Below, in pieces: positions 7,065 through 48,400 of a stretch of DNA of 64,000 bases (positions are counted from its first letter, which is position 1; each line of letters opens with the position of its first letter). Source of the stretch: Monocercomonoides exilis PA203. Taxonomy: Eukaryota; Protista; Preaxostyla. The position numbers and the translations under genes were made by a program. Under the pieces are notes generated by a model. The model did no database searches, was not told the DNA's origin, and worked only from the letters and a program-made list of their open reading frames with translations. The stretch covers positions 1,116,001 through 1,180,000 of the forward strand of contig LSRY02000011.1 in assembly GCA_001643675.2 (NCBI GenBank), given 5' to 3'.

Positions 7065-7267
7065 TATTTCGAAAATGAAAAACACGATAAAACAATTCCA
7101 ATCAAACGAAAACAATGTTCTGTTTCAAATCCTGTTCATAATACAATAATCACGATAGTTAATCTCAAATGATGTTGGGAATTCTCAAATAAAATGAGCT
7201 TATTTGAATAATGCATTCCTCATTCAGATGAAGATAGGTTTGATTCGAATTAACTTTTATTATAATT

Positions 7268-7513: not shown

Positions 7514-7812
7514 TATAAACTATAATAACAGATATCACTTGATGGACAATTTTTGGAAAATATGTGTAATTATTTTTGAAATTATAACTTTTTTCGGAGT
7601 ATTGATTTTTAGAAGATTGTTTGTCAATGGGATGTGTTTTTGTATTCAGATGATAAAATTATAAAACTGTTTCAAAAACAAATGTGAAAGCTGAAATAAA
7701 GACGATGATCTCTTGAATATGCCTGTTCACTTTTCAGTGTTCATTTCCAAACATTCAAGGAAAATTTTCCAATCGAAAATTGTGAATGAAAAAATATGTT
7801 TTGATAAATAAT

Positions 7813-21500: not shown

Positions 21501-24500
21501 ATGCTGGAGAAATTCGCCTTTTCAGAGAGGCCCGTGAAGAGCTACCGCTACACGCTGCATTCTGTGCTTGTGCATTCAGGAGGGGTTGGGGGAGGCCACT
21601 ATTATGTTTACATCAGCCCCAAATGCAACGGAAAATGGTTTCTCTTCAACGACACCTCAGTCAGCCGCTCGTCGGCCCACGAGGCAATCGACGAGAACTT
21701 CGGAGTGACAGTTGCTGTGCCCCCTCCACCACAACAGAAGTCTCCTCATTCAAGTCAAATGCAGTCACTACAGGGAAGAGGCAGTGTTTCCTCTGGAGAC
21801 AGAGCCAAGCCGCGGGTGGTTGGGCGCATCTCATCAGCGTATATGCTGGTGTATGTGCGAAGCGACGTGGCGCGGGAGATTCTGCAGGACGTGGCCGAGA
21901 GCGACATCCCGCGCCATATCCGTGACTCGATCGTGGCGTTCCAGGAGAAGAAGATGCGCATCGTGTTCCGCCTGCACAGCGATGCTTCTCTGTGCAGCAG
22001 GACCATTGCGAATGAGGAGCCCATGTTTGACCCGCGTAAGGCAGTTGTTTTCTGGCTGATGCGGACGGCCTCGTGGAAAACGCTGAGAGAGACGCTCAGC
22101 CGGCTCACGGGGATCAAAGAGGAGAAGATGCGCATCTGGAGGCTGATGAACAGGGCGGTGGCGGAAAATAGACAGCTGACAGATATAGAAGAAGAAGAGG
22201 AGGAGGAAGAGGAAGAAGAGCGAGAAAATCAGGAGTTGAATGAAAATAACGATAGAGCTAACAACAGCAATCAGAACAATACCACATCCAGAAGTGTTGG
22301 CATAAACCCCTTCATCCCACGAATCACACCAAATGTTGATTCTTCTCTTGTCCGCAGCATCCAATCCGTCTCTTCTTCTCTCCTTCCTTCCTCTTTTCCC
22401 ATCTGGCGGCGTTCCTTTGCACCTCCTCTTCCCCCAAATGCTCAATCTCCTTTCTCTTCTCGTTCTTTGTGTGTTTTGTCTCCTGTCAGCTGTTTGGATC
22501 CCACACAGCAAACAGACTGGGAAAATGATAAAACGCCGCTGGCGCAGCTGTTCTTTGCGTCTGTGAATCACATCTATGTGGAGGAGATGATGATGCCGGA
22601 TGAGGAAGTGAAAGAGGAGAATGAGGAGGAAAAGGAGGAAGAGAAAGGGAAAGGAAAGGAGAATGGAGAAAGTTGCGAAGAGGAAGGAGATGATCCCGAG
22701 AATGGTGCAGAACAAACAGATCCAAAGAAGAACAACAAAACTGAAAGCAAAACAGAATCCGAACATGAATCAAATGAAGAAGACCGAACAACTTCTGAAA
22801 CAAGAAGATTGAATGAGGGAAAATTGGGAGTGGAGATAAGCGAGGCAGCTATTCAGGAGCAGATTGAGCAGCAGCCTCTGCTGATTGTTGACCAGGCACA
22901 GGCGAGTGTGAGCACAATAACAGGAAACAGCCATCTGAATAGCAGCAATTTGAATTTGATGGAGAGGGAAAGAGAAGGAAATAAAGGGAATTGCTCGAAT
23001 AATAACACAAAAGGTAAAAGTGTGGAAGGAAAAGAAGGAAAAGAAGGAGGAAAAGAAGAAGAGGAAGAAGAAGCGACAATTGCGAAGCCTCTGATCATCA
23101 ACCCTGAGCAAATCGTTCTTGTGACATCGCTGAATTCTGAGATAGAAAAAAATGAGCACAACAATCAAAGTAATGAAACATCTTTGCAAACAGACAACAC
23201 ATCTTCAGAGAAGAAAGAAGAAGAAAAGAAAGAAAAAGAAGAAAAAGAAAAAGAAAAAGAAGGCAGTTGCGAAAAGGAAGCAGCGGAAAAAGAAACAGCA
23301 GAAAAAGAAAAAATAGCGAATGATGCGTCAGTTTGGGCGTCTTCCACTGCAAATGAACTGAAAGCTGATTTGAAAGAAGAAGAAGAAGCAGAAGGTCAAA
23401 CAGAAAATGGCAAAGAAATCGAAATGACTCCGATGTACAGCGCGGAAGCTGAAGAGTATAAAAACGATAATGATTTAAAGGAAAAAGAAAAAGAAAAATT
23501 AGAATCAGTCAAAAATGCTTCTGCGGAGGCAGAAAAGCCAATTTCTTCAGCAGTTCGGTCTGAAATCAGTAAACAAAACAACACAAATACAACTTCCACG
23601 TCTCCAAAACCAAAATCCTCTTCTCCTTCTCCTTCATTGCCTTCCTCCTCGTCATCATCTTCTTCTTCTTCCTCTTCTTCTTCTTCCCTCCCCGCGTGGC
23701 ACCCTCACCGAGTCCGAAGGAAAACCACCCCAGTTCTCTTGTTCTTCAAGCTGTTTGAGCCGTCCACAGGGAGCATCCGCTATGTCGGGCGCTTGGCGCT
23801 TCCTCGCCACTTTCCTTTGATTTTCTTGCAGCCGCTGCTGGATGTGTGGGTAAACAGACCAACTCTGGCGAATTTGTATGTCAATTTCTTGAACAGTGCT
23901 AAAAAGAAACAGAAAAAATTGATGAAGAAATTGAAGAAAGAAGCGAAAGAGGCAAAAGCTAATGGCACATCGTCATCATCTTCCTCCTCCTCCTCCTCCT
24001 CATCATCATCATCATCATCTTCTTCTTCTTCTTCTTCTTCTTCTTCTTCTTCTTCTTCTTCTTCTTCTTCTCCATCAGGAAATGCTTCTGATGCAAATGC
24101 TGATCAAACAGCAGAACTAATTCCTTCCCCTCAGTCTCTCATGTTTCCTGAGGAATATCTCACTGAAGATGCTCTTTCTGTCTTGCACTTCATATCCAAA
24201 TTAATGACACATTCACATTCCATTTCTTCTTCCTCTTCCTCTTCCTCCTCTTCTGCTTCTTCTGCTTCTTCTGCTTCTGCTTCTTCTGCTTCTGCTTCTT
24301 CTTCTTCTTCTTCTTCTGCATCTTCCACCTTCTCTTCCCCCTTTCCCTCTCCCTCCCTCTCCCTCTCGCCTTCTCCTCCGTCCGTCTATCTCTTCCACTT
24401 CTGTGACCGTGTGGGTGCCCTCATCCCCTGGTGGTGCACCGTCGCCTCGGCAGGGCTGCGGAGCGGCGATCAAGTGCTCATCCAGCCCATCCCCACAGAA

Positions 24501-26893: not shown

Positions 26894-27718
26894 ACATAAA
26901 CTGCTTTTTTTACCTCTCGTATTCCTCTGTAAAAGAAGTCATAGGAACTTTTTCTTTGTTTCTTTCTTTTTTTAAAGATGCTAAATATTGTTTTAATATC
27001 TGCTTTTTGTGATTTATTTTTTATTGAATTTTTTGGTGGACTTTGAGCAATTTTACGTTCAATATTATTTTTTTTTATTTGGTTATTTTTTGACGTTTTG
27101 GCGAAGGCAGAAAACATGCAATCCAAAAGAAAAGACTTCAAATTTTGTGTCATCCATTTTTTTGGTGGAGTAAATCATTTTTTAAAACAGACTGTTTGTC
27201 ATTCAATAAATGCTGGTCAGCATATTATTCGCCAAAAGTACAGTGCTGGAAGCATGAAAATGAAAAAAAAAATAAATTAAAAACCACATTTCGAATAAGT
27301 TTTATTCGAAAAGAATCAAAAAAAAAAAAAATTAATCAAAAACAAAAAGCCTCAAAACACAAGTCAGTTGAGGCGAAACATCACAACTGCTTTGAATGGA
27401 TCTCGTTTCAACAACAACTTTACAATTAAAAAATGAAAAGGACAATAGATCAGTTGTTTTATTAAGAGTTTATCAAAAGGATAAAAGCACTTTTGCTCAA
27501 AACACAAAAAAGAAAAGGAAAAATAAAAAAATAAAAAAAGAATTTATCAACATTCTAACTATTCAACAAAACTACAAAGATTAACAAAATAACGTATGTT
27601 TAAATAAAATGAAATAAAGTTAGTAATTTCAAAAAAATTCCGCTTAAATATTTTAGAATTCAGCCAACAGCGCAATCGCTTCAATCAAAAAACCAAATTC
27701 TCTTTAGCATTCCTTGTT

Positions 27719-29972
27719 TCAGTGATGCGCAGCCAAATTCAACTGTTCCTCTTCTTCTTCTTCTTCGTCTGGAAGGTCATCAATAATCTGCTGTTGCTGA
27801 TTTCTCCGTGCCATGCAGAGCGAACACACACACATCACAATCATCAGCAGCAGCACAACTCCCACCACAACATACACCACAATCGCCACCGTGTTCACTG
27901 GCACAGGCTTCTTAAACTCCGCAAACGTAATCCGCACAGTCGATGTCGCAGGCTGAGAGGTGTTTGTTAGCTGCATCGAACCAAAATACAGTATACCCGA
28001 AGAAGGTGTCAAATACATCAGCGTTTCCGCATCCGCCCCTCCTCCAAACACTTCCATGGCCTCTGCAAACTTCCCATTCCTCAGCCCCGTTTTGTCTTCC
28101 TTCAGAGTCGTGTTGAAGTTGTACCGGAAAGTTATACCTCGAGTCGATGCATCTGCTCCGTTCGGTATTACTCGCTTGTTTTCGGGAAGCAGATTTGCCT
28201 TTCCGCCAGGCGTCCCCACGGCAAGTTCAGTTGCTGCCCCGTCGTACGAAAGTGACTCGCCAAAACGGCAGTGTATCACTTTTTCGCAGCCAGCGCTGGG
28301 CTTCAGCGCATAGTTGTCGCATTCCACAGGAGCAGAGGAAAGGAGATGAAAAGGCATTTTAGGAGAATTGTAAGAAGAAGAAGAAGACTGAGATTCTGCA
28401 GTAGAAGATGGTTGTTGATGATTGGGTGTTGTGAATGATGAAGATTGAAATTTACTTGATGTGATGGAAGTGGAATATAACTGTTGATTGAAAGATCCTT
28501 CATTTGTGGTTGGAGGGCATTTCATTGAATTCAGCAGCACATAAACCAATCCTTCGCCTTCATTCATTCGCGGAGCACCAACAAAAATTGACTGTCCGTC
28601 AAGAGAGCACATTGTGGAAACTCCAAATTGTCCTGTAATAAGCGCATCTGGTGCAATTGCTGACAATTTGTGTGATGTAGAAATGGCGTTTTGATTGATT
28701 GACATGTGGAAATTCAAGTGAGATGGCTTTGTTTGAAGTGTTGAAGCGGATGATGAGATGGCATTGTTTTCGATGAAATATGAAAGCGCTGAGGATTCAG
28801 AGGCTAACACATCAGAAGACGATGCTGTGTTGTCCTTTACAGTCAAATATTGCACGGCACACAGCAAAGATGGAGCAGAAAAAGAAGCAGATGTTTTGTG
28901 AAATGTATTTTCATTGAGAAGTGAAGCCTGTGATATGTGTTGAGTCTGTGATTCAGACGTAGGCAATGGTTGAAGTGACTTCGGATCAATCATCAGAAGA
29001 GCAACAGCAGGTGAAGCATATCCACCAACAATCAGTCCCAAAGAATTTCCGCTGACGCTTGCTCCGAATCGCGGAGACTGTGCACCATCAAACTTCAATA
29101 TTACATCCAAAGAATGGCTTGTGTCAGCTAATAAAACGGAAAAATTCCATAAATTTAATTTAAAAAAATTCAAAAATTTTTGAAAATTCATTCACAATTC
29201 AAAAAAGATGGATCATACAATCGCGTATGTTATAAATATGCACTGCCCCAACAACATTTCTCGCATTGGACATGAAAGTTGTTCCATCGTTTTCTGCAGG
29301 GGAGCCAATTCCAAGAATCCCATCAAATGTGCAAAAAACGCTCGTTCCAAACATTGCATGCGGGTGACTATATTGTCTCACCAATGTTGTTTCTAAAGTC
29401 ATATGGTACGAAAATGATTAAATTTCATTAAAAAAATTAGTTTGAAAACTTCCAGTAACTTCATCAAATGTATATACAAATACATATGACATTGTCGTAT
29501 CTTCAGTGAGAGCTTCTGCTAAGCCTCTTGTTGAGTTGACATCGCATTTTCTTGTTGAACCAGTAATTCCAGATGGAGCACTTATAACAACGATACGTGA
29601 ATTAAGAGCTTCAGAAAAAGAGGAATGAACGCTAAATCCAAATGAATTGCAAGCTACATTATCAGGAGGAACAATTGTTGTCGCGTAATTAAAACTTGGC
29701 TGTTCCTCATTGTAATAATAAAGATGAACGCATCCTTTTCCATTATTACTTCCATCTGCAATTGTTTGAAACGATCAAACGATTGTTAAATTTATTAATA
29801 TATCAATGAATTTCATACGATCACTAACTGCAATCCAATAATAAGATAAGAATTGAAGATTATCCCCAAATGAAACGCTTGGATAGTCTTGAGGAGGGGA
29901 TACACTCCATGTTGAAATTGCATGCAATATATGAATGGTAGCCAAGACAATTAATAAAGTACTCAAAATCAT
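27719..29972 (-). CDS. Type I membrane protein with FG-GAP (integrin-alpha-like beta-propeller) repeats, about 4 exons
   Basis: Signal peptide MILSTLLIVLATIHILHA; repeats FGDNL..IAVS, FGFSV..VVISAP, FGTSV..LGIGSP..GAVHIY, FGASVS..LIVGG, FGVST..IFVGAP..GEGLVYV, FGESLS..LAVGTP; C-terminal TM VAIVVYVVVGVVLLLMIVMCVC and an acidic tail. Confidence 0.75.
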
Positions 29973-30352
29973 TTTATTCAAACAAATAAAAGAAAAACAA
30001 AAATAAAAATATACAATTATGGGCTTTTATTCAATAAAGTTCAAAATTTGACAAAATGTCTCGTTGTGTATATGCGGTGTTAAGTCATTCTATTTGAAAA
30101 AAATAAGAAAAGAATACACAAAAAAACATAATAAAGATATTGAAAAAATGAAATTCTATTTTTCATTCCCAAATATTAATCTAGAATATTTTAAAATAAT
30201 ATTGAAAAGCTCTCGGAACAAAAGGAATGTCAAATTTTTCTCAACTCACCGATTTCTATAAAAATAACTAATCTAATATAACTATTAATCATGAAGAAAT
30301 TAAAAAGGAGGTAAAGAAGCCAAATTTAGAGTGATCATTAAAATATTACTAA

Positions 30353-33300
30353 TTATTCTAATGGAACTATTTTGAAAAGAAGAGTATTGACGAGCACTTT
30401 GTTGCCTGTCTTCACAAGCACTCCCATCACTTTCCCATCAAACGGTGCCTCCAGCATCACGTCCATCTTCATTGCAGTGATCTTTCCAATCACCTGCCCT
30501 TTCTTAACAGTATCTCCAGTAGCAACTTTAATCTCGCTCACAATACCTGGCATTGGTGCTGCAAACTGTGTCTTGTCCTTCAAGTCTGCTTTTGTTCCGA
30601 CAACAGCTGCCTCCAACTTCGCCTCTGTCTTCACCACAAACTCCACCCCGTTCACTTTGATGATCACCTTCCGTGTGGAATCAGCATCAATTGGAGTGAT
30701 TCTTGCAAGCTCAACATTCAGTTCAACCATTTCTCCGCTCTTTGCATCGCTGGGTGTGGTCGATGATGAAACAGATGATGATGAAGGTGTCAATGAAAGA
30801 ACAGCCTTCAGATCTTCGTCGATTCTTTCAGCTGGCACACGAATAGTCACTTTTTGCCCAACTTCCATTCCGTAGAAGAAGACTGGAGTGGGAACAAACG
30901 TTGCCATCGTCCCGAACTGCTCCACAAACTTCAGATACCCTTCAAACACAGGCGGGTACATGATGTGCGAGATCACGTCCCTGTCTGTCGGCTCTCTCTT
31001 CAAACGCTCATTCAGCATCTCCCGCAGCTTCCCAAAGTCGATTGGCGGAAGCGCTTCTTCTTTGCCTCTGATCTTCTCGCCTTTCAGCACTCTGTCTCTC
31101 AGCGCAAGGAACTCTGGCGACAACTGAAATGGCTCTCTCCAGTGGTGCGGGTATCCCAGATTCCCTTTGAACAGCCCTTTCACAGACTCTGGGTACGTGA
31201 TGTCGATCTTCCCTTCCATCACGTCCTTCGTCGTCAGCCCTTTCCCCAGCAGGAACAGTGCCAAATCTCCCACACACTTCGATGAAGGAGTCACTTTGAT
31301 AAGGTTCCCCAGTATTTTGTTGCAGTCTCTGTACATGTCGAGTGCCTGGTCCCATTTGTCCCAGATGTTCAGTGCTTTGCTCTGCATCAGCAGATTCGAG
31401 TACTGTCCTCCGGGAATCTCGTGATCATACACACGCGCCGTCGACGCCAGCTGCCCGCTCTCGAGATGCTGATAATACGAACGCACCACTCCGAAATAGC
31501 TAGCCAGTGGCTCCACTGCACGGAACGGGATCAGCGCTGGACGTGGCGACCGCTCAGTTGCAGCCAGAAACGCATTCAGCGACGGCTGCGATGTCAGGTC
31601 AGACATGGAAGAGATCGCCAGATCGATGATCTCGCATCCGTGCTGCGCCATCATCAGGCACGTCGCCAGCGCATTCCCTGACGTGTTGTGCGTGTGGAAG
31701 TGGATGGGCAGGTTCGTCACTTCACGAAGCTTCTTCATGAACGGCTCGGCATTCTGAGGCTTCAGAAGACCTGCCATATCTTTGATTCCGAGAATGTGTG
31801 CTCCGATTCCTTCAATCTCCTTTGCCAGTGATGCATAGTAATCGAGAGTGTAGATCTTCTCGTTTGGATCCATAAAGTCGCTCGTGTAGCAAATGCACAC
31901 TTCAGCAATCTTGTTCGCTTTGATCACAGCCTTTGTGGCTGACTTCATCTTCTCCACATCGTTGAAGCAATCGAAGATTCTGAACACATCAATTCCAGCC
32001 TCCGCTGCCACTCTGCAGAACTCCTCCACTGCGTTGTCTGGGTAGTTTGTGTAGCCCACCACATTGCTTCCTCTCAGCAGCGCCTGGAAGCACACATTCG
32101 GAATACGCTTCCTCAGCTCTCGCACTCTTTCCCACGGGTCTTCCTTCAGGAATCTCAATGCAACGTCGAACGTTGCTCCTCCCCACATCTCCAGTGAGAA
32201 CGCATTGTTCATCACTTTGCTCATCTCGTCTGCTGCACCTACCATATCGTTTGTCCGCATACGAGTTGCCAGTAGTGACTGATGCGCATCTCTCAATGTG
32301 GTGTCTGTGACAAGCACCCTCTTCTCGCGATTCGCCATAATCCAGTCCTTCACTGCATTTGGTCCCTTTGCATCCAAAATAGATTTGGCGTTCTCCTTTG
32401 TCAATTCCTTCTGCTCTGATGTAAGTGTTTCGTTGTATTCCTCAAGAACTTTTGTCGATTGCTCTGATGGCAGGCAAGGTCGGGTCTGGAACGAGGCTGT
32501 TTTTCCTGATTTGAACTGTGATTGAGGCGCATTCATAATCAGGTCGCACAAATACTTCACAAACTTTGGCGCTTCTGGTGATGCTTTGCGTGGAGGACGT
32601 TCAACTGCTGGCTTTGCGGCTTCTTCTTCTTTAAATTTGGCAATAATTGCTGGGTCAAGTTTCAGAAACGGTCCCATCTTTCTGAAGCGGTTGTAACGAT
32701 GCTCAACAAGCGCATCCTGGCTCATTCCGTCGTATTTTTCCAATTCAGTCCACAGCCAGGTGACTAAACGCTTCTTCAATTGTGGGTATTCCATGTATGT
32801 TTCTCTCTTTCTGCCAAGATCCTCTTCTTCCCAGATAATTCCGTCAATAGTTCCTTTTTCAAGAAGCTGATCTGCGTAGATCTGTTGCACTTTAGCCAAT
32901 TCTGCTGCATCCTTTGGAAATTGCTCTGCTTTGTGTTTGTCGTCTTTGTATCTTCCCAGAATCGATGCTGCGCCTTCTGGAGAAATGACGCCATACCATG
33001 CAGATGAGAACATTGACACGCTATTTCCCATCCCAAGACCGATTGCACCACCACTTCCACCTTCACCCAGAATGCACGTCAGCAAAGGCACCTTCAGCGA
33101 CGACATCCGACGAAGGTTCGAAGAAATGGCTTCACTTTGTCCTTCAGTCTCAGCAGCGAACGAGGGCTCTGCTCCAACGGTATCAACCAAAGTCACACAT
33201 GGAATGTTAAAATGTTCGGCAAGCTCAAAAAGTCTATATGCAGCGCGATATCCGTGTGGTGTGGCCATCCCATAGCCCATCGACGCAAACTCTCCTTGCG

Positions 33301-34369
33301 TGTGTGCTTTGAACGTTCCAATCACAACAACTGTTCTGCCGCAGTGGCACTTTTTCTCTTCTTTTTCTTCCTCTCCTTTCTTGCAGCAGCTCTCACAGCA
33401 AATTGGGAGGCGTGCAAGCCCACCATGGATGCAGGAATCTGTACCAATTTTTCCATCTCCGTTCAGCTCTACATAATCCTCAAGCACATTGAAGCAGATA
33501 TCTTGTGCTTGGATACGATCAAGCATTCTTCCACGGTTGAAATCTTTCTGCTCAATAACCCTTTTTGTTGTGAACTGCTCCTCTTCACTCAGCGCCGGGA
33601 GCTCCTTTGGCTTCATGTCCTTATGAGTATTTATAAGTAAATTAAAAATTTGTTCAACAAGGTTGATGGCCTCTGCCTCTGAACCAACAAGGAGATCAAG
33701 CTGACCATGCTCGTACAAGAACTGAGCTGACTGAAATCCTGAAGGGCATGCTCTATCGTATTGATTTTGTTTTTGGTTGTACATTGTGTTCAGAATAACA
33801 CCAGGTCCAGCAAATCCAATTCTAGCTCCTCGAATTCCGATTCTAACGTCCGCCTGCATCGCATACGACGCGCTCACTCCACCATATGTGGGGTCTTCAA
33901 ACAGGGTGATGAATGGAAGTCCTGCCTTTTTGTGAGCAGCTGCTGCAACCGAGACTTTTGCCATCATCATCAGCGCAACTGTTCCTTCTTGCATCCGGAC
34001 GCCTCCTGATCTTGTAGAAATCACAATTCCAAGCTTGTTTGCTGTTGCATACTCAAATGCAAGTGTCAGCTTTTCTCCTTCTGCGCACCCCAGCGAGCCT
34101 CCAAACACTTTGAAATCCATGTCTGCCCGCACATATTTCAGACCCTAACGCACAAGCATTCGCATAAGCAAGCAAAAATGTTACTTATCAACAAAAGTTT
34201 GCTTTCATACCTCGTGCTCCACAACAAACGCTCGGACACCGCAAAGTGTTTCTGTTTTTGCAATCTCCGTTTTAATTGCAGCTTCATATGGCTTTGCTCC
34301 AAATGAAAACTTCAAAAAATCTGTTGGGGCAATATCTTCGAAAAGAGGTTGCTTTTTAATATCAGACAT
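30353..34369 (-). CDS. Biotin-dependent transcarboxylase-like fusion: AccD + AccA carboxyltransferase, pyruvate-carboxylase CT domain and biotinyl domain; no biotin carboxylase
   Basis: AccD motifs GGSLG..GEK, SGGVRMQEG, PTYGGVSAS, IGFAGP; AccA motifs DTVGA..E..GQSEAI, GEGGSGGA, VISPEGAASIL; PC-CT motifs DTTLRDAHQSLLATRM, WGGATFDV, KDMAGLL, HFHTHNT, HEIPGGQYSN, IKVTPSSK; biotin site AMKM. ATG at 34369, one GT-AG intron 34210-34145. Confidence 0.93.
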
Positions 34370-34869
34370 TTTACGAATCCTATATTTTTTTCGATGTAAC
34401 CATTATGTATATTTCAATGAAAAAAAAGAAATATTTGTGGAAATTGTTGCACATCAATAGGGCAATTGATACTCATCAAATAATACATAAAAAAATTCAA
34501 CAACAACCTCTGAAATGATTTATATAATTATGGTTAGAAAATTTTTGGTATTTTCCATGTTATCGTTAAAGTTTTTGTTGCGAAGAAATATATTTTTGGT
34601 TATCAAAAACTGAGATATATATATGTTGTACTTTATTATTTTTGTTCATTTCCTTGTTGTTTGAGGTTTTGTATTTTCAGTATCACGCAATGTGTTTTAG
34701 TTTTTATAGCGTTTTTTTAATTTTTTTCAACATCCATAAAAACTGTACTGGAATTAAAGGTAAACGAGAAATCGATGCTTCAAAAGAAAGTTCAACAGAA
34801 ACAGCAAAATCTTTTACCTCTCAAAAGAACAGATTATAAGATTTCGTCTTTTGTCACGAAAATTTGACA

Positions 34870-36160
34870 AATCCACATCAACAAATGGATATTATTTGGA
34901 AAATGGAAGCATCAAAAATTGGGATATGCGTTCGAATCACTTTTTCGATTTAGCATTTATAAATGTCACACATTGAATTTTCAGGATATCGGAAAGAATC
35001 CTGTAATTCTTTCAGAAACTCCATGGAATAAAGGACAGTCTCGAATGAAACAAATGAAAATATTGTTTGAATCGTTAGGAACGAAGATGGGTTTTATTGC
35101 ACGAACGTCGTCGCTTGCTGCATTTTCTTCTGGAAGGCTAACAGGAATGGTTCTCGATATTGGGCATCATTCGACAGACGTTTCACCTATTGTTGATGGC
35201 TTTTCCCTTTCTTGGAATGTTGAGTGTTCTGCAATTGAAGGTGAAATATTTTCAAAAGCTCTTGCAAAATGGCTTGAAGCGAATGATATTGAAAATAATC
35301 CGGTATATGAACGAAAAAGTGGGGAGAACACGAAAGGAAAGACTGGACCAATGCACTCTTCATCATCAGCTACTCCTTCATCATCGTCTTCTGCTTCCGC
35401 ATCTTCCAACCAACCTTTGAACCAACTTCATGATTTATCTCAATTCACAAAGTCATATCTCACATATCAGACATTATCCGCAATCGAAGCTATAATGGAA
35501 TCGACAATTTCACTAAAGCCATCACCAGCAGGATCAACAACACTGGCGGATTGTGATATTCACTATGAACTGTCAAATAGGCAGGCGATTGATATAAACG
35601 CAGGATCATGTCTTTCCAAAGAGACATTGTAGAACCTGTAGTGTTGGGTCTCATTTTACGAACATGCAATGAAATACAGATCATCTTTAAATTCTTTGAT
35701 GGTTTTGGAAATTCATTGGATGGTAAATGAATTAAAAATATATTGTCTATTATTCTTGAAGGGAAACTACTTCTCAGATATCACTTTCCTTTTAACAGAT
35801 GAGGATTCTTTCGTCCATCGAAGAAATAGGTCTTTAAAAGTCTCAAAGCCTCGCCTCAAAATAAACATCCTGCTTTGTGAATGAAAGTCAAACAATCTGA
35901 AACAAATTGTGGAGCAATCTGCTTGTGATAGACTGGGGATCGTACATGAAGGGCTTTTCCGACGGTTTGTGCAAGAAGTCGATGCACACGCCCCTGCCTC
36001 TGTGAGAGCGAAGGTCATTGCATCAACCATCCTCGAAAAAAGAAAGGTTACAATATGAATTGGTGGATTGCCGTTGGGATCTCTTGAAAATTTTACCCAG
36101 AAATGAGAATCAAAGGCAGAATATGACGAAGTCAGTCCATCAAATGTTAAAAAGTGATGC
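34870..36160 (+). pseudogene. Actin-related protein (Arp4/BAF53-like) pseudogene, frameshifted
   Basis: ENGSIKNWD (frameshift at ~34925) AFESLF; PVILSETPWN..ILFE; AAFSSGRLTGMVLDIGHHSTDVSPIVDG; C-terminal WIGG..GSL and SKAEYDE fragments broken by stops/frameshifts; no N-terminal DxGS motif seen. Confidence 0.7.
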
Positions 36161-36353
36161 TTATGTTGATGCGTTCATTTCATCTTCTTTCACATTTCAG
36201 AAAAGCACTTCGCCACTTCTTTTAAATTTTTGGATTTTGATTCTATTAATGTTATATTCATGTAAATATAAACATAAATTTCTTCTTTTTTCGACCCATT
36301 ACGATTTCTTTCATTGTGTGATCTGAACATTTATTTATTTGAACTTGTTTGTT

Positions 36354-37376
36354 ATGAGCACAGAAAAAATTATTCCAGTTGTCCTTCTTTGTGCACTTCC
36401 AGCAAGCGGGAAAAGCGAATCAAGAGCGTTTTTGCGTTCACTTCCTGTGGAAAAGTCACGTGCCGAGTTCAAAATTGGTTTCCCCACTATTCAGCTTGAT
36501 GACTATCCTTATGTAGAAATGATGAAATTCTTTGATGCTGAGTTGGAGAAGCAAGGCCAGACAAGACCTTTTTATTACAGCGAGCTTTACACCTTCAAGA
36601 ATCCATATGTTTGGGGTGTTCTTGTTGAAATGTTGAATGAAGATTATCATGACGTTATTAACAAGCGTACAATCGAGACAACTACTCCAACAAAATGGAT
36701 GCTCGAACGTCTTGATCGTATTTCTGCTTCAAGAGGATTACCAAAGCCTTTCGAAAACTATTCCGCTGATGTTATCGCCAAGCTCTGTGCTCGCTTTGAT
36801 GATCATTGTGGCCGTTATCTCAAGGAGAAGAATGACTATGCAAAGTCATACTCACCAGAACGCACAATCATCATAGAATTTGCACGTGGTGGAGGATGTG
36901 GTGCTGAGCGGTATCCTGACTTCTTCCCACTTCCAGAGCCTTTTGGTTATCAGTACTCTCTCAAACAATTTTGCCCGGAAATTCTTTCTGTGTGTGCAAT
37001 GTTATATATTTACGTAACTCCTGCCCAAAGCTTTGAGAAGAATTTGTCTCGTGCTCCTCCTGTTGGGTGGACTGGATCGACTGATATCTTCCATTGCGTC
37101 CCAGATGTTGTTATGCACTGTGATTATGGCTGCGATGATTTTATGTATTTGCTCAAGCAAAGCGATAAGGACAACACACTTAAAGTTCCAGGAAAAGACG
37201 GAAAGACTTATTACATTCCGGCTGGTATTTTCGACAACAGAGAAGATCTGACAACATTCTGCAGAGGAGATGTGTCAACATGGCCAAAGGATAGCGTAGA
37301 AAAAATATATGCCGCAATGACAAAAGCTTTTCAGGGTCTTCTGCAGCAATATAAAGTTATTCATCCAGAAATGTAA
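36354..37376 (+). CDS. Intronless P-loop NTPase/kinase-fold hypothetical protein (340 aa)
   Basis: N-terminal hydrophobic strand plus Walker A-like VVLLCALPASGKSE; DDYPY; Walker-B-like TIIIEFARGG; MLYIYV..S..KN..R lid-like segment; globular composition. Confidence 0.7.
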   Translation: MSTEKIIPVVLLCALPASGKSESRAFLRSLPVEKSRAEFKIGFPTIQLDDYPYVEMMKFFDAELEKQGQTRPFYYSELYTFKNPYVWGVLVEMLNEDYHDVINKRTIETTTPTKWMLERLDRISASRGLPKPFENYSADVIAKLCARFDDHCGRYLKEKNDYAKSYSPERTIIIEFARGGGCGAERYPDFFPLPEPFGYQYSLKQFCPEILSVCAMLYIYVTPAQSFEKNLSRAPPVGWTGSTDIFHCVPDVVMHCDYGCDDFMYLLKQSDKDNTLKVPGKDGKTYYIPAGIFDNREDLTTFCRGDVSTWPKDSVEKIYAAMTKAFQGLLQQYKVIHPEM

Positions 37377-37935
37377 TTGCTCTCAGCATTGTTAAGAGTG
37401 AATTTAATCATTTGCCCATTTATTTCTTACAATAAAAATAAGTGCACTTACCGGTTTTGTTTGTATGTTTTTTATGATATATGTAAGAGCGTTTATCCTG
37501 TCAATGCTTTGTTTTCACCTTTGCATAAACTTTTTATACATATTAAAACAATCATCAGATGATTTCAAAGTTGGGTGCTTGGGTGAAATATTTTTTTAAA
37601 TTTTTTTTAGAAAAAAAACCACAATCTACTTCAAACTTTTTTTTGCTTTCAAATCATAGAGTCAGACATTATTTTTAAAAAATATATTGAAAATTATTAA
37701 AAATTGAGAAAACATTTCGAAAATAATGTGTGAAAAATAGTTTTAAAATCAAAATACTTAGTTAAATACTTTCGACAACCCCCACAATTTTTTAAAAATT
37801 TTCCGATTAGAATAAAGTGATTTGATCTTCATTTTGAAGAAAATGTAATTTGTATTTCTTTTTATTTGATCAAAGCCATTATTTCAATAATAAATCATTC
37901 TCCAAAGAGAATTATTTTTTAAGAAAGAAATCAAA

Positions 37936-38157
37936 ATGCCTTTAAGTTTTGGCCATGAAGAATGGATACGTTCTGGAAGTGATATTGACAATGAAATAAG
38001 TCTTATCAGAAGCAGATCCAGAGGCGGAGATCACTATCCTCAAGGAGTTGAATTCTGCATTCAGTTTTTGCAAAGAATGAAATCGGAAGGAAAAACCATC
38101 AAAATTATTGCAGACAAGACCATTCCAAAATGGACATGGCACGTTGCTCCAGCATAA
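37936..38157 (+). CDS. Microprotein type A (73 aa), unknown family, copy 1
   Basis: ATG-TAA ORF; 42/64 aa identical to paralog B, many differences conservative or synonymous, indicating coding selection. Confidence 0.75.
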   Translation: MPLSFGHEEWIRSGSDIDNEISLIRSRSRGGDHYPQGVEFCIQFLQRMKSEGKTIKIIADKTIPKWTWHVAPA

Positions 38158-38736
38158 ACAATCCAATGTTTTCTGTATTGTGTATATCCAGATTTATTAG
38201 ATCGCTCCGCTTTTTATTTTTTCCCACGCTTCTTGAAGGTTTTTCTCCAGTTTTTAATTTTTGAAAATAGTTTTTGGCCAATATTTTTAAAAAAACATTG
38301 TTTTGAAACTACGGTAAAATCTATGTTTCTTTAATATGAAAATGAACTTTTAAGAATATTATTTATTTAATTATTATTTCAACATGAAAAATGTGCAATG
38401 GCAAAATGTTCCTTTAACGTGAAATTGTGATTACGAGGGAACAAAAAAGTGAGATGATTGAATCTTGAAAATTTGAAATTCAATCATTGGCCACTTTTGG
38501 AATAGAATTTTTTATTACGAAATTGTCTGTGTGAAAATTGGATTTTTAGATAGCCAATTAATACAATGTTTTGGAAGTGACATAAATTTAAAAACAACTA
38601 CAAAATTTTTATATATCTTTCCGACTAAATGCATTGAAATATTTTTTTTTAAAAAAAAATAAAGGATTAAAAAACTTGTGCAATACACACATATATATAT
38701 TCGAGATTCACGGCAGTTTTAGCAACACTATCATAT

Positions 38737-39006
38737 TTATGCCGCTTCGAAGAACCAAGTCCATTTTGGAAATGTTTTCCTTGTAATAATTTTTACGGGA
38801 AAATTTTGTGCTTTCATTTGATGCAAAAATCTTATGCAATTATCGACTCCTTGAGGATAGTGATCTCCGCCTTTGGATCTGCTTCTTACAAGATCAATTT
38901 CATTATCAATGTCATTTCCAGAACGTATCCATGTTTGGTCGCCAGTAATATGGCGAAGAAACAAACCTAACCCAACTCTTGCTAAGAATACTGCAACATT
39001 AGCCAT
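38737..39006 (-). CDS. Microprotein type B (89 aa from MANVAV), unknown family, copy 1
   Basis: Paralog of A sharing WIRSGxDIDNEI, GGDHYPQGV, PKWTW; extra amphipathic N-terminus. Alternative upstream ATG at 39057. Confidence 0.75.
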   Translation of the reverse strand: MANVAVFLARVGLGLFLRHITGDQTWIRSGNDIDNEIDLVRSRSKGGDHYPQGVDNCIRFLHQMKAQNFPVKIITRKTFPKWTWFFEAA

Positions 39007-39560
39007 GATGTTGTAATAAAATTTTGTGATTAGATTAATTGCTAATCCATAATACATATATTTTAATAAATAAAAAATGGGGATTCAATATGATTTCGCG
39101 ATTTTAAAATTGAATACATTTTTGTGGAGCACAGATGTTAATTCGTTATTTTATTTAAATGGATGATTGCTTTTGAATCAATATATTTTCTCTCAAAAAA
39201 TTCTGTTAGAGAACATTCATAAAATATTGATGAGTAAACTCTGATTAGTTATAACAACATTTATTGTTTTTTTTCGTAATTGAAATCTCAAAAATCTTCA
39301 TTTCAAACAATTTTCTTATATATATATATATAATCCATCTCCAAAATTATAAAACCTAAGAAAAATCAACAATCATGTTGATATATTGATTCAAAAGCAA
39401 TCATCCATTTAAATAAAATAACGAATTAACATTTGTGCTCCACAAAAATGTATTCAATTTTAAAATCGCGAAATCATATTGAATCCCCATTTTTTATTTA
39501 TTAAAATATATGTATTATGGATTAGCAATTAATCTAATCACAAAATTTTATTACAACATC

Positions 39561-39830
39561 ATGGCTAATGTTGCAGTATTCTTAGCAAGAGTTGGGTTAG
39601 GTTTGTTTCTTCGCCATATTACTGGCGACCAAACATGGATACGTTCTGGAAATGACATTGATAATGAAATTGATCTTGTAAGAAGCAGATCCAAAGGCGG
39701 AGATCACTATCCTCAAGGAGTCGATAATTGCATAAGATTTTTGCATCAAATGAAAGCACAAAATTTTCCCGTAAAAATTATTACAAGGAAAACATTTCCA
39801 AAATGGACTTGGTTCTTCGAAGCGGCATAA
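39561..39830 (+). CDS. Microprotein type B, copy 2 (palindrome mirror)
   Basis: Identical translation to 38737-39006. Confidence 0.75.
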   Translation: MANVAVFLARVGLGLFLRHITGDQTWIRSGNDIDNEIDLVRSRSKGGDHYPQGVDNCIRFLHQMKAQNFPVKIITRKTFPKWTWFFEAA

Positions 39831-40409
39831 ATATGATAGTGTTGCTAAAACTGCCGTGAATCTCGAATATATATATGTGTGTATTGCACAAGTTTTTTAA
39901 TCCTTTATTTTTTTTTAAAAAAAAATATTTCAATGCATTTAGTCGGAAAGATATATAAAAATTTTGTAGTTGTTTTTAAATTTATGTCACTTCCAAAACA
40001 TTGTATTAATTGGCTATCTAAAAATCCAATTTTCACACAGACAATTTCGTAATAAAAAATTCTATTCCAAAAGTGGCCAATGATTGAATTTCAAATTTTC
40101 AAGATTCAATCATCTCACTTTTTTGTTCCCTCGTAATCACAATTTCACGTTAAAGGAACATTTTGCCATTGCACATTTTTCATGTTGAAATAATAATTAA
40201 ATAAATAATATTCTTAAAAGTTCATTTTCATATTAAAGAAACATAGATTTTACCGTAGTTTCAAAACAATGTTTTTTTAAAAATATTGGCCAAAAACTAT
40301 TTTCAAAAATTAAAAACTGGAGAAAAACCTTCAAGAAGCGTGGGAAAAAATAAAAAGCGGAGCGATCTAATAAATCTGGATATACACAATACAGAAAACA
40401 TTGGATTGT

Positions 40410-40631
40410 TTATGCTGGAGCAACGTGCCATGTCCATTTTGGAATGGTCTTGTCTGCAATAATTTTGATGGTTTTTCCTTCCGATTTCATTCTTTGCAAA
40501 AACTGAATGCAGAATTCAACTCCTTGAGGATAGTGATCTCCGCCTCTGGATCTGCTTCTGATAAGACTTATTTCATTGTCAATATCACTTCCAGAACGTA
40601 TCCATTCTTCATGGCCAAAACTTAAAGGCAT
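40410..40631 (-). CDS. Microprotein type A, copy 2 (palindrome mirror)
   Basis: Identical translation to 37936-38157. Confidence 0.75.
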   Translation of the reverse strand: MPLSFGHEEWIRSGSDIDNEISLIRSRSRGGDHYPQGVEFCIQFLQRMKSEGKTIKIIADKTIPKWTWHVAPA

Positions 40632-41332
40632 TTTGATTTCTTTCTTAAAAAATAATTCTCTTTGGAGAATGATTTATTATTGAAATAATGGCTTTGATCA
40701 AATAAAAAGAAATACAAATTACACAACAATAAATAATAAAAAAAAAAATTTATTTAAGTCTCATTGCACTGGTTTTTGCAATGGTTAAAAAATTTGTCAA
40801 TAATTTTGAATGTTTCAGTTTTTTATTTAGATAATATTGATGTTGATTGATTCCCTTCTGGAAGTATGATCACAATTTGTGTTGATTTTTATTTTCAAAT
40901 TGCAAGTATTATTCTCAAAATATTTATTTATTTATTCATTCATTCATATTTATTTTTCTTCGATTTCTTTTAACAAAGTTGAAAAATCATTGCTTTAACT
41001 TTTTTGAATTCTGCATTCAACATCAATTCTCGTTCAAAGTATTGAAAAACAAAATATTTGGTTATTCAAATTTATTTGTTTTGTTTGCTAATTTCAAATA
41101 TTGAAGTGAAATATTAATTTTTTATTAAAGAAATGATAATGCAGAAAAAAGTAAAAGTTAAATATCTATTTGATAAAATATAATAATAATATTCCTTAGG
41201 AAACAAATAAACGCGCTTATGAAATTTTTTTATAACATATCTACAAAAATATCCTTTCAAAAACTGTTGACCAGAAAAATCTAATCAAAAACAATGAATG
41301 AATTAAAATCACACTTTTCAATGAAAATATTG

Positions 41333-41591
41333 GTGATTATTTTTGAAACCATATATATTTGTACAAAAATATCGGTTTGACTATTTTGTTTTGAATCTTT
41401 GTTAATGAACACAGAAAAGTGACAACTCCAATTTTTGAAAATCGCAACTGAATTTTTTCATCAACAATTGGACTTAAAAACAATTGATTAACATTTTATA
41501 TTAGATTGTTTTTTATTAGGCTAATGATATTGAATTTACATAATAATCAACACCACGATAATAGTAATGGTTTCAAAAATTATCACACATA
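41333..41591. repeat. Degenerate inverted-repeat element related to the 7.1-7.6 kb fold-back
   Basis: 41333-41352 vs 41567-41586 inverted, 19/20 match; reverse complement of 41542-41591 matches 7561-7610 at 39/50. Confidence 0.55.
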
Positions 41592-42292
41592 TGACAAAAA
41601 AAAAAACAGTTCATAAGAAAACTCAACTTATCGAGCAGTTAAAAAAACAGTGAAAATATTCATAGTGTTTTTTAAAAATCATTTCAATCAAAAAAGCAAC
41701 TTCATCATTTTCGGACTTTTTCACACTGACGAGCAAAATTCATAAGATGATATATAACAAACTGTTATGTGAATAACATATTAAAATATTAATAAGAACA
41801 AACTGTTTATTTACAGAAAATAAAACGAAATTTATACTTGTTTGATCTAAATTTGTTATTTTTATTTTTATTTCTTGATCGAAATAAGATTGACTCTGTA
41901 AATTCTTATTTGTTGGACAATATAACAATAGATTAATTCAATTTTATTGTTTGTTTTAAATTGCAATTGGTCTTTTGACGGAAAAAATCAGAAACAGGTC
42001 TGTTGTTTTCAAATTCGAATAATATTTTTGGGTATTTTTTTCTAATAAAATAACGTTTGAATAGAAATTGTTGTAAACTTTTTTGGAAAACGATAATATT
42101 GAGTTTTTATAAATACAAAATTCAATCATCTCACATTTAATTTGCAAATAAACAAGAAAGCAATAATGTTTCAAATAAAAAATTATTATTTGTTTTCTTA
42201 TTCAATTATCGCATCGCGTTAAATAAAAGGCTTGCCTTCTTCTAAAAACGAATAATTTCAATTTTTAAACAACAATAAATCATATCATTCAG

Positions 42293-43895: not shown

Positions 43896-46719
43896 TCAAC
43901 CATAATCCCCACGAAATAATGAAGAAGACAAATTCCGCTGCTCAGTTACGTTCAAATTCGCTGAGTCATTTTCCGTGGCGGTTTTCATCCCCGCAGCAAT
44001 CATTGCATCATGAAGCTCTCTTTCTAACATGCTCCTCATCTTTTTCTCTTCCTTGGCTCTGTGATGCAGAAGTTTGTGTGTGTTTTCTTCTTTCTTCTCC
44101 TCTTCTTTGGCTTCCTTTCGGATTCTCCGTATTTTCAGCACTTCTTTTTCTTTCTCCGCGCACTCATCTGCCGGAAGCAGCTCCTTTTCCAGCTCTGCCA
44201 AAAGCATCTTTTCTCTGTCTTCTCCAAAACAGCCAGCTTCATTTCCTTCGCACTCTTCATTTGCCGCCCCTTTCATTTCCTCTTTCTGCTTCTTCTCTTC
44301 TTTTTTCAGCTGCTTTCTCATCTGCTCGTGCTGCTGGATGAGCCTCGCCTCTTCCGGATGTGCGTCCCTCCACGCCTTCCGCCTCTCTGCCTCTTCCGCC
44401 TTCATCCTCGCTGTCTCTTCTTCTTTCTCTCTCAAATTCTGCAGCAGCCGCTGCGCCTCTTTCACCCGCCCCATCGCAATCACCCGGGCTTCTTCGATTT
44501 TCTCCGCTTCTTCTTTCTCTTTGGCTGCTCTTTCTTCGTCCAATCTGCGCTTCTGTTCTTCTTTCGCTGCTTTGCTCGTTTCGTCGTTGGCGTCTTGCCT
44601 CGCTTTCTCTTCTTGCTGCTTTCTTTTCTCTCGTTCTTGTTCTGTTTGCTTAAGAATCTCTACAATTTGCGCTTTTCTTTCCTTCTCTTCTCTTCTCTTC
44701 TTCTCTTTTTGGCTCAAATTTTCATTGAATTTTTCAGCTTCTTTTGCTTTTTTGCCTTCTTGTTTTGCTTCTTTTTCTCTCACTTCTTTCGGATCTGACT
44801 TAGCAATGCTGTCATTCTCCTTATTCTTTTCTTCTTTTCTCTCATTTTTGCTAGTCTTTGCCTTTGATGCACTGCTGTTTTCAGGACTGCCTGGAACTAA
44901 TTGCTTTCCTGTTTTCGGAGAAACATCTGACGCGTTTTGAAGTTTTGTTCTGTTTTCTTCTTTGCTTTTTGTTTTTATCGTTGGATCTTTTTCTTCAGCC
45001 CCTCCTTTACTCGAATCGTTCATCTCTTTGGCTTTGAGTTGATTGGCTTTTTCTTCCTCTAAAACTTGCTTCTGCTTCTTCCTTTCATTTTTCTCTTTCT
45101 CTTTCTCTTTCTCTTTCTCTTTCTCCTTCTTTTCTCTCTCTTCTCTTTCCGCCCTTTCCTTCCTTTCTTGCTCCATCTTCCTTATCCTCTCTTTCTCTCT
45201 TCTTTCTGCTTCCTCTTTCTCTCTTTTCATTCTCTGCCTCAGCTCCTCCTCTTCCTGCTCCATCAGCCTCCTCTCTTTCTCTCTCCTCTCTTCTTTCTCT
45301 CTCTCTTCTTTCAGTTTCGCCTCTCTCTGCCTCTCTTCATCCTGCCATTTTTTGAACTCTGCTTTCTTCTTCATCCGCTCTGCCTTCGTCTGCATTTGCG
45401 TCTGCATCTTCCGGTCAAATCCGTATTCATCATCGTCCTCTTCTTCCTCATCCTCATCCTCTTCTTCTCTATCTGAATATTTCCCCTCGCTTTCATTTCC
45501 TTCATCTTCATTCGCTCCTTCTCTGCTGCCTCTTTCTCTGTTGCTCCTCCGAATGCTGCTTTCAAGTGCTTCCCTTTCAGCCATCTTCTTTTTCCTCTCT
45601 TCCATCTCTTTCTTCTTTCTCGCTTCTTCTTTCTTTCGCCTTGCCTCTTCTTCCTTTCGAAGTGTCTCCATCATTTTCTCTTTCTCTTTTCTTTCTCTTT
45701 CTTCTCTTTCCATTTTCTCTTCTCTTTCTCTAATTCTTTTTAATCTTGCTTCTTCATATTGCCTTTCTTTCTCCTCTTTCTCTTTCTCTCTCTTCCTCTT
45801 CTCCTTTTCCTGAAGCAGCCTTTCTTCTTCCTCTTTCTTTTCCTTCGCCTTTCGAAACGCTTCTGCTTTCTCCTTCAACTCGATGATGTACAGTTCTCTT
45901 TCTTCTTTCTTCCTTTCTTCCTCTTCTTGTCTCCTCTTCTTCTCCTCCGCATCTCTCTTTTCCTGTTCCCGCTTCATTTTTTCTTCTCTTTCTCTTCTTT
46001 CTCTTTTGATTCGATCTCTTCTTTCTTTCCTTCTCCTTTCTTCCTCCTCTTTCTTTCTTCTCTCTTCCTCTTCTCTCCGCTTCCTCTCTTCTTTTTTCCT
46101 CCTCTCCTCTTCTTTCCTCTTCCTCTCCATTTCTGCCTCTTCTCTTTCGCGCTTCGTAATAATCTTCCGCTGCCCAAATCTGCTCCGCGTCGGAGAAACT
46201 CCAAACTGCATCGGAGAAATTATCTGTGCATCCACATGCGCTCCTTCTCTTTCTGCTGTGCGACCTTCTTTTGGTTCGTGTTTTTCTTTAATGGCAGCCA
46301 GAGTAGTTTCTTGTTCACTCATCATCGACTCGTCTTTCTTCAGTCGCTGGATCATCCGGTCCAATGCACGATCCCACACGTCTTCGCGAACAGAGGATGC
46401 CCAATCTGAGAAAGTAACATTGATTAAAGAATTTACATTCAGAAATGTCATTTCCATTTAATAAGTGTTTATGAAAAAGAAAATGGAATAAAAAAGAATA
46501 AAAATCAAAAATGAAATAATCAAACAATAAATACAGAGAATAATTGAAGATGGCAACAAACTTGTTTGCGCTGGACGCTGCGCTGCTCTCAGGCGATTTC
46601 TCGACTGCTGATTCAAAGTGCTTTGACGAGTGTTTCTCCGGCCAGTCGCATTCATTGATCGATCTGGTGAACTTGACGATGAATAAACAGAAGTAACAGA
46701 AGCAACTGAAGAAGAAGAG

Positions 46720-46751
<32 letters not shown>

Positions 46752-48400
46752 AGAAGAAGAAGAAGAAGATGATGATGATGATGATGATGATGAAGTCGAT
46801 GAAGATTGGTTCGATGTTTGAATCTTTCCTCTCGGCGAAGGCTGATAAAACGCTCTGAACGGAGAAAAAGCAGGCGCATTCTGCGAAGAAGAGTCATTTC
46901 TCCCCGAATTCTGAATGGACGACGAAGTATTCGTTGAACGAGGATATGTGCTTGTATTTGACTTAGCTGCTCCTGTTGTTGTTGTTGCTGCTGCTGATGA
47001 TGATGAGGGAGCCACTGATGAAGCAGACGCGGCTGTTCCAGCAGATTTCCGTGTTGTCGTCGAAGTGGTTTTGACATCACGAACAGAAGCAGCTCGTCTG
47101 GCTGCCCCACTTCTCAAGGGAGAATACACAGAAAGCGACGTCTGCGCACGCCTTGCCTCGATCTTCCTTCGGTTTCTCTGTTCTTTCGGAGAAACAGCCA
47201 CCTTTTCGCCCAAACCGCCCTTGTTTGTGTTTGCTGGAAGTGAGCTTAATGACGTGTCTGCAGACAGCGGGTGCCTCTGATCGTCGTAAAATGCGTTTTT
47301 CTTCTTCTTCTGAGACCGACCCTGAGGCAGCGTCGACTGCGCGCGCCACGGCCTCCCAGAAGAGAAAAGCCCTTCTCTTCGTTCGCTCGGCCTCTTTTCT
47401 TTGCGACTTTCTGCATCGAGTGGTTGATCAGAAGGCAACTCCTTCTTTTCAGTTCTGTCTTTGATGGACTTTTGAGGCTGCATTCCGTCACGCCGTCTGT
47501 TCTGAGGCCTCGCAGCTGTTCTCTGCTGTACAGGTTTTGAAGGAGATGATCGCAGATCTGGAGCAGACGCAAGCGGCGGAAGGAACGTGGCTGAAGAGAG
47601 GTAATTCGTGTCTACTGAGTCAGGCGGTGTCTGCAGTGCACTCCGTGACGGTGGGGGAGATTGTGCGCCTATTCTTCTTCGAGGCATCCGCGGCGGAGGC
47701 GACTTGTGCCTTATTTGCACACGGCGCGGACGAAGCGAGGCAGACGGAGAGGCAGCTGTTGAACACGGCTGTGTTTGCAGTGCTTTGCGATCTTCTGAAA
47801 TGGAAGGCGTTTGACTTGGTGAAACTTGCTCAGAAGATGCTTCCATATCTGTTTCAATCACACCACCAAATGATGGATCGGATATTGAATTGTTTGGAGG
47901 TTGTGTATGTTCTGATTTTTCTGTTGTTTTATGTTTTGCTTCTTCTCTTTTGCGCAGTTCACGTGCAGACTCACACCAGTCATCTGCAAATGATTCATTC
48001 AATTCTTGTTCGATCCCATCTGCAGATCCGGTATCATTGATTTTTTCTTCATTTTTAACGGTGGAATTCTCAACTCGCATTTCTTTGTGCGATGAAGGTG
48101 ATGAATTCAAAACTGCGTTTCTGCCATGAGAAGGTGATCCTTTTTTTACAAATCTTCCTTCAGACACATGAATTGGTTGTGAATGAGATAGATATGGAGA
48201 TAGGTCAGGCTCCTTTGCCTTTTTGATAGAACGAATACGTGTCTGAGCAGGAGATGTGATAGCAGGAGGAGAAGGTGGCGTTGGAATTCTCTCAGAATTG
48301 ATGGTCAAATTCTTCTCGCTATCAACACTTCTCATATCAAATGGAGGTGTTTGCAAAGCACTTCTATCATTTTTTGATATCAAAGAACTTTCAATTTCCT
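43896..48400 (-). CDS. Large low-complexity protein (Ser/Pro/Arg-rich N-half, Glu/Lys/Arg coiled-coil/SAH C-half); start unresolved
   Basis: ORFs of 641 and 853 aa separated by an AT-rich intron-like segment near 46440-46530; long ER/K runs. Confidence 0.65.

Follow-up and report, generated by a model that had tools for sequence, protein, structure and literature searches.

A small gene-bearing palindrome of Monocercomonoides exilis carries two gene pairs of an undescribed protist domain

The palindromes of primate sex chromosomes consist of inverted arms more than 99.9% identical, set around a unique spacer and bearing intact paired genes; their arms range from 9 kb to 1.45 Mb, and the near-identity of the arms is commonly attributed to intrachromosomal gene conversion. 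Here we analyze a 2.9-kb palindrome (37844-40723) in a 64,000-nucleotide stretch of the genome of Monocercomonoides exilis PA203 (GenBank assembly GCA_001643675.2, contig LSRY02000011.1; C5:1116001-1180000 in our numbering). This stretch is referred to as the window, and unprefixed positions are counted from its first nucleotide. The palindrome holds the genome's only four genes of a protein domain that is undescribed in the sequence and structure libraries searched. The explanation we consider probable is an ordinary one: inverted duplication of a two-gene unit by an accident of the fold-back type, which would have doubled the dose of the genes that encode this domain. Experimental work on yeast and on tumour amplicons has documented inverted duplication by fold-back or template switching (PMC10164571, PMC4689423, PMC3834830).

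A repeat search of the window returned two inverted arms of 1343 nt separated by 194 nt, and a direct base-by-base count found one mismatch between them: 1342 of the 1343 positions are identical (0.07% divergence), which is not attributable to chance. The arms, the spacer and the lone mismatch at 39134/39433 are as the original prediction described them. Its convergent pairs of small open reading frames (ORFs) were likewise recovered from the ORF list: a short gene (A) and a long gene (B) face each other in the left arm, and beyond the spacer their mirror copies B′ and A′ face each other in the right arm. One sample provided four DNA runs, and four metatranscriptome runs cover parts of the stretch; runs X1, X2, X3 and X5 were compared over 36300-42000, all as contigs and not as raw reads. 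The features are as follows.

37844..39186, no strand: left arm, from the repeat search; equal to one 1343-nt contig of DNA run X1 with 0 differences, depth 199
39134, no strand: the sole arm-to-arm difference, G, against T at 39433 in the right arm; it lies in non-coding DNA upstream of both B and B′
39187..39380, no strand: spacer, 194 nt, 21.6% G+C, holding a (TA)n run
39381..40723, no strand: right arm, reverse-complementary to the left except at one site; contigs X3 40272-41027 and X1 40694-41392 bridge it to the right flank
37936..38157, plus strand: gene A, short form, 73 aa, the domain alone; ORF, domain profile E-value 3.6e-27, RNA contig 38012-38308 collinear through the stop codon
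38737..39006, minus strand: gene B, long form, 89 aa from the second ATG; ORF, profile E-value 1.5e-29, RNA contig 38691-38891
38737-39057, minus strand: gene B from its alternative start, the ATG at 39057; ORF open, 106 aa
39561..39830, plus strand: gene B′, mirror of B (alternative start 39510); ORF, protein and profile search of the genome
40410..40631, minus strand: gene A′, mirror of A; ORF, protein and profile search of the genome

The edges of the palindrome are abrupt: inverted complementarity ends sharply at both outer and both inner ends of the arms, and no inverted similarity above that of shuffled controls was found in the 300 nt outside the arms or between the two halves of the spacer. 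The spacer, itself asymmetric, is single copy in the genome, as are its junctions; it holds no gene in the ORF list and no known RNA (Rfam and tRNA scans of 36-43 kb were empty). Folded as single-stranded DNA it does no better than shuffles (z = -0.96), and a hairpin miniature inverted-repeat transposable element (MITE) at the palindrome centre was rejected on this value and on the spacer's single copy. No microhomology or priming inverted repeat was found at the junctions. The original prediction's statement that no transposase, target-site duplication or known domain accounts for the structure holds: no transposase lies at the palindrome, the outer ends lack a target-site duplication (the flanks, ending in GAAGAAAA on the left and beginning with CAACAATA on the right, have no direct-orientation similarity), and Pfam, NCBIfam and the PDB had no significant match for the encoded proteins.

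A small symmetry at the right arm may be noted separately. The last five nucleotides of the spacer, TGTTG (39376-39380), are the reverse complement of the first five of the right flank, CAACA (40724-40728), such that removal of the right arm would make the two abut as a perfect 5+5 (10-bp) palindrome; for the left arm the corresponding letters are AAA and TTT. A 5+5 palindrome is expected by chance at about 0.3-0.4% of junctions in the AT-rich DNA of the window, and the match may be due to chance.

The M. exilis PA203 assembly was built from Oxford Nanopore reads with Canu, Nanopolish and ten rounds of Pilon (82.3 Mb in 101 contigs; PMC8767320), and the sequencing runs bear directly on whether the palindrome is real. 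The contigs of X1 are clean, and hence derive from short reads; X3 is a library of 2016. In X1 the whole arm is exactly one unbranched contig (37844-39186, 1343 nt, depth 199). The spacer contig (39157-39410, 254 nt, depth 44) overlaps the inner 30 nt of the arm at each of its ends, and the outer end of the arm joins two distinct unique contigs, 37476-37873 (depth 81) and 40694-41392 (depth 57). This graph is that of a true inverted repeat, because any path via the spacer enters and leaves through the arm in opposite orientations. From X3 comes a 756-nt contig (40272-41027) that includes 452 nt of the right arm and crosses into the right flank. The depth of the arm is 2.4-4.5 times that of spacer and flanks in X1, a ratio that we read solely as at least two copies, contig depth being crude and biased by G+C; it is the opposite of the halved arm depth by which the original prediction proposed that a fold-back artefact would be recognized. 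At the mismatch site the X1 arm contig has the left-arm letter and an X2 contig (39381-39798) the right-arm letter, and the presence of both letters in the reads fits a real difference between the arms. The palindrome is present in the DNA of the organism; a fold-back made in assembly does not account for it.

Genes A and B are convergent, tail-to-tail, with 579 bp between their stop codons. The A protein (N-terminus MPLSFGHEEW) starts directly at the domain and resembles short forms found elsewhere, whereas B has a hydrophobic Gly/Ala-rich N-terminal segment ahead of the domain and begins MANVAVFLARVGLGLFLRH; taken as 89 aa, B aligns collinearly with the long forms of other organisms, which have 87-96 aa. 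The two proteins are 62% identical. At the DNA level their inverted coding cores match at 73-80%, and the similarity does not extend beyond coding sequence (178 nt at 77%). Across 68 aligned codons dN is 0.26, dS 0.70 and dN/dS 0.37. By these values the A/B duplication is old and both gene types are constrained by purifying selection. The arms, by contrast, have diverged by 0.07%, and the proposal that an older duplication of A and B is nested within a near-identical one is borne out by these figures (dS of about 0.7 against one arm difference in 1343). Protein and profile searches of the whole genome (82,301,135 bases, 101 contigs) found exactly these four genes and no further members. A collection of 15 billion proteins contains no exact copy of A or B (73, 106 and 89 aa), and so the genes appear to be unannotated.

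There is modest evidence that A and B are transcribed, with unspliced 3′ ends. RNA run X5 has a 297-nt contig (38012-38308) that extends from within A through the stop codon into the 3′ untranslated region, and a 201-nt contig (38691-38891) that covers the 3′ part of B in the same way; both are free of differences and have a depth of about 5, and X5 leaves the spacer, 38309-38690 and the flanks without a contig. Inside their own arms B and B′ are each preceded by 129-180 bp of identical, private DNA, and A and A′ have just 92 bp of upstream DNA in common, with different DNA beyond. The mean 5′ untranslated region in M. exilis is 62 bp (PMC8767320). Given this length and the private upstream DNA of the B copies, there is no need for the symmetric bidirectional promoter that the two B genes had been proposed to share in the centre, where the spacer is in any case asymmetric.

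The proteins belong to a wider family. An exhaustive whole-library profile search with A and B, whose hits are cluster representatives, returned 63 relatives at E ≤ 1e-3, 25 at ≤ 1e-10 and 3 at ≤ 1e-30. They have in common a domain of ∼68 aa with the consensus ..DE.W...P.....EI.L...R..D.YPQG...C..FL..C...G..F.I.A.KT.P.WTWYYE, in which P33, Q34, G35, E18, T60 and P62 are invariant or nearly so. In proteins of 66-108 aa the domain stands by itself. In others, two to five tandem copies are fused to SH3 domains (P0002, P0003), and further fusions join the domain to a protein kinase and Sel1 repeats (P0045) and to a helicase C-terminal domain (P0033) or coiled coils. In the long forms about 20 hydrophobic Gly/Ala-rich residues stand ahead of the domain, and similar stretches precede each repeat of the tandem proteins; the N-terminal stretch is on this account read as part of the repeating unit rather than as a signal peptide.

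Only two of the relatives are named, both of them hypothetical proteins of Tritrichomonas musculus; the remainder come from metagenomes, metatranscriptomes and other assemblies. One relative's contig also encodes tubulin cofactor D, which marks it as eukaryotic. The named proteins match the A/B profile over the ∼68-aa domain: KAK8889045.1 (91 aa) with an E-value of 2e-19 and KAK8881057.1 (387 aa, four repeats) with 1.7e-16. The first resembles B in having the same length and a hydrophobic N-terminal segment, and its gene stands head-to-head with that of a 72-aa short form like A. The T. musculus relatives are nonetheless 46% identical or less to the M. exilis proteins.

An AlphaFold model made with a 55-row alignment has a pLDDT of 93 and a predicted beta-alpha-alpha-beta-beta order. 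Against the PDB neither of two models gave a clear fold match: for the pLDDT-93 model the best Foldseek E-value was 0.09, and an exhaustive VIA-align pass reached at best Z 4.9, which is under that tool's own meaningful level. A profile search of PDB sequences gave 0.22 as its best E-value. Pfam had no match for A, for B or for ten relatives, and no Pfam family recurred among 55 domain instances; NCBIfam had no match; a word-index protein search found nothing with either B or the 55-row domain alignment as query. The ESM Atlas gave no usable match in a feature search, and a fold search of the atlas with the first, poorer model gave only matches with a TM of about 0.5 to unrelated families. The domain is therefore undescribed in the libraries searched; it is conserved across metamonads and other uncultured protists, has a confident predicted fold and is without database relatives. 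The original prediction had spoken of an unrecognized microprotein family. No known domain was found, as it held; the proteins are, however, not private to the locus, having 63 relatives in some of which tandem domains are fused to SH3, kinase or helicase parts. A and B carry an undescribed domain and are not an isolated microprotein oddity.

Pairs of short and long forms occur at other loci. In T. musculus (L011, JAPFFF010000005.1) the 72-aa short and 91-aa long forms are head-to-head, 240 bp apart; in a metagenomic eukaryote (L015) 79-aa and 95-aa forms are head-to-head with 84 bp between them; and at a third locus (L048-L050) 72-aa and 96-aa forms are head-to-head at a distance of 110 bp. 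A fourth contig (L020:617-1596, ENA ERZ15610583) has a 980-bp palindrome of 85% identity with two head-to-head 90-aa long-form genes, the mirrored stretch taking in the upstream DNA of both. Pairs of inverted neighbours are thus a recurring feature of the domain family. The T. musculus pair is divergent and lies outside any palindrome, whereas the A–B pair of M. exilis is convergent. As a side observation, the 72-aa short-form gene of T. musculus (5542-5760, minus strand) is missing from the genes listed in its record; the same ORF was called on Logan contigs (L012).

In phylogenetic trees the parabasalid-type short forms make up a well-supported clade apart from the long forms. The best tree groups M. 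exilis A with B (support 98/85), and the placement of A with the parabasalid short forms is not rejected by the approximately unbiased (AU) test (p = 0.105). As the origin of A and B, a lineage-specific duplication and an ancient short/long pair are both compatible with the AU test.

The sequence of events we favour would begin with a 1.34-kb chromosomal stretch that carried a tail-to-tail pair of A (short) and B (long). A single inverted copy of this 1343-bp segment would have been set 194 bp from the original, probably by an accident of break repair or of replication template switching of the fold-back type. The event would have been recent, or the arms would have been kept alike by arm-to-arm gene conversion; the near-identity may reflect either or both. 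The presumed effect is a double dose of the genome's only A and B genes, with each B copy driven by the identical upstream DNA in its own arm. For the proteins, a role as small cytosolic binding modules is the likeliest; the same domain occurs in tandem and fused to SH3, kinase and coiled-coil parts. The short and long forms probably work together, as their being neighbours in several organisms suggests. A stronger version, in which the two forms are an obligate pair made in balance, would explain both the inverted neighbours in parabasalids and the oxymonad and a conversion-homogenized palindrome with the sole four copies in M. exilis; we regard it as a tentative idea and doubt that it holds.

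Several points weigh against this account. The DNA runs are all from the same strain and sample as the assembly, and while they exclude an artefact of the nanopore reads or of the assembler they are no biological replicate; contig depth, as said, is crude and G+C-biased, and no single read or contig spans the whole palindrome. The RNA consists of two low-depth contigs from a mixed metatranscriptome, of undefined strand and without 5′ ends. Recency and gene conversion are indistinguishable in the data of one strain, there is no empty site to compare and the repair mechanism is inferred, and the function of the domain likewise rests on inference.

The alternative that survives best is that the palindrome is old: selection for a balanced double dose of A and B would keep its arms identical through continual gene conversion between them, in the manner of the ampliconic palindromes of sex chromosomes. 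It would account for an identity of 1342/1343 with sharp edges; the genes are the genome's only members of the family, so that dose could matter, and inverted pairs of the family recur elsewhere, the 85%-identical palindrome included. Nothing, however, speaks positively for such age: the arms do not continue outward into diverged sequence, there is no orthologous palindrome for comparison, and RNA depth is low. A recent event accounts for the same data more simply, and we consider the older origin rather unlikely. The palindromic or conversion-maintained dosage cassette of the original prediction stands in part: read plainly, the structure doubles the dosage by inverted duplication, but gene conversion is not separable from recency.

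Far less probable is that a fold-back chimeric nanopore read, or an error of Canu or Pilon, made or homogenized the second arm. The assembly is of a kind in which this could happen, since Pilon treats repeats poorly and was run ten times on a Canu assembly of nanopore reads, and every read set is from the same sample. Yet the short-read contigs show both spacer–arm and both arm–flank junctions, the arm is a single unbranched contig whose depth exceeds that of flanks and spacer, the 2016 library bridges arm and right flank, and the palindrome lies 1.15 Mb inside its contig with different, unique flanks on its two sides. This explanation is largely refuted.

The palindrome could also be imagined as a regulatory device. 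Read-through transcription of convergent or of mirrored genes might make it a source of hairpin or double-stranded RNA, or recombination between the arms might invert the spacer as a switch, and the geometry permits both: the gap between the convergent A and B stops could be read through, and inverted arms of 1.3 kb could recombine. The RNA contigs, however, end at 38308 and 38691 without overlap and none lies on the spacer, and hence the long double-stranded RNA that had been predicted has left no sign in transcripts that cover just the 3′ parts of the genes. The spacer has neither a gene nor a known RNA, so its flipping would change nothing obvious, and there is no recombinase nearby; we hold such a device to be very improbable. 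Least credible of all is a foldback-type mobile element or a MITE-seeded palindrome with the arms as giant terminal inverted repeats, which the overall shape fits but which is at odds with one copy in 82 Mb, a unique spacer that folds no better than shuffles, the absence of target-site duplication and transposase, and arms that carry ordinary conserved genes. The inverted duplication of an A–B unit by a fold-back-type accident thus remains the reading we prefer.

The genes around the palindrome are ordinary eukaryotic ones: a transcarboxylase-like fusion, an actin-like gene, a bromodomain protein, an armadillo protein and a UCH protease. One further feature lies close by.

27717..37568, no strand: segmental duplication of ∼10 kb, matching C6:1437647-1447554 by blastn at 82-92% identity; it ends 275 bp left of the palindrome

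The duplication holds a 490-aa FG-GAP-like gene, the transcarboxylase-like fusion gene, an actin-like ORF and a 345-aa P-loop gene, of which a third copy, 75% identical, is found on contig C24. Over 36413-37551 the X5 RNA contigs on the 345-aa gene and the main X1 DNA contigs carry 6-18 differences from the window and diverge from it at 37551, the end of the C6 duplicate; the highly expressed copy of this gene therefore seems to be the C6 paralogue and not that of the window. Other inverted matches in the window are shorter. One has 104-nt arms (7265-7368 and 7413-7516) that are 83% complementary around a 44-nt loop. Another comprises many staggered inverted matches of ∼100 nt (72-91%) between 23967-24350 and 46689-46817, that is, between a 1673-aa UCH-protease ORF and a 641-aa ORF on the opposite strand, and their staggering suggests a common short-period coding repeat.

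A sample of 294 kb of the genome, the palindrome included, contains two inverted repeats of at least 300 bp and at least 95% identity within 60 kb. The other, from a 200-kb sample of contig C6, consists of 333118-333675 and 338005-338561 (560 nt, 95%, 4.3 kb apart). Two per 294 kb is compatible with hundreds genome-wide, though the sample is small. The literature searched yielded no mention of palindromes in Monocercomonoides. The palindrome is one small, read-verified, gene-bearing case in the M. exilis genome, and at 2.9 kb it is within reach of single long reads or of PCR, which makes it convenient for the measurement of arm-to-arm conversion and of spacer inversion. The domain it carries is an unannotated and conserved eukaryotic one, with a confident predicted fold and without sequence or structural relative in the databases; it stands by itself, in pairs of short-form and long-form genes, or repeated in tandem in proteins of signalling type, and is a candidate for its own family entry and for a first structure determination.

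Set beside the known systems, the locus has much in common with the palindromes of primate sex chromosomes: long, near-identical inverted arms, a unique spacer and intact paired genes. It differs in being a thousand-fold smaller, with arms of 1.3 kb, in belonging to a protist, and in having two tiny genes per arm, and gene conversion is here a possibility. With fold-back or template-switch duplications and with origin-dependent inverted-repeat amplification (ODIRA) (PMC10164571, PMC4689423, PMC3834830), it has in common an interstitial inverted copy beside the original, a short unique loop and sharp junctions. ODIRA gives an inverted triplication with the middle copy inverted, and a triplication of this type was ruled out here by the presence of two arms only and of four gene matches in the genome; fold-back duplications are described at short inverted repeats, whereas the M. 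exilis junctions have neither a priming inverted repeat nor microhomology. The suggestion that the palindrome might represent an undescribed system thus finds no support, gene-bearing palindromes being in general a known kind. Taken together, the structure is a gene-bearing palindrome, or inverted segmental duplication, of that known kind, and the new part is the protein domain.

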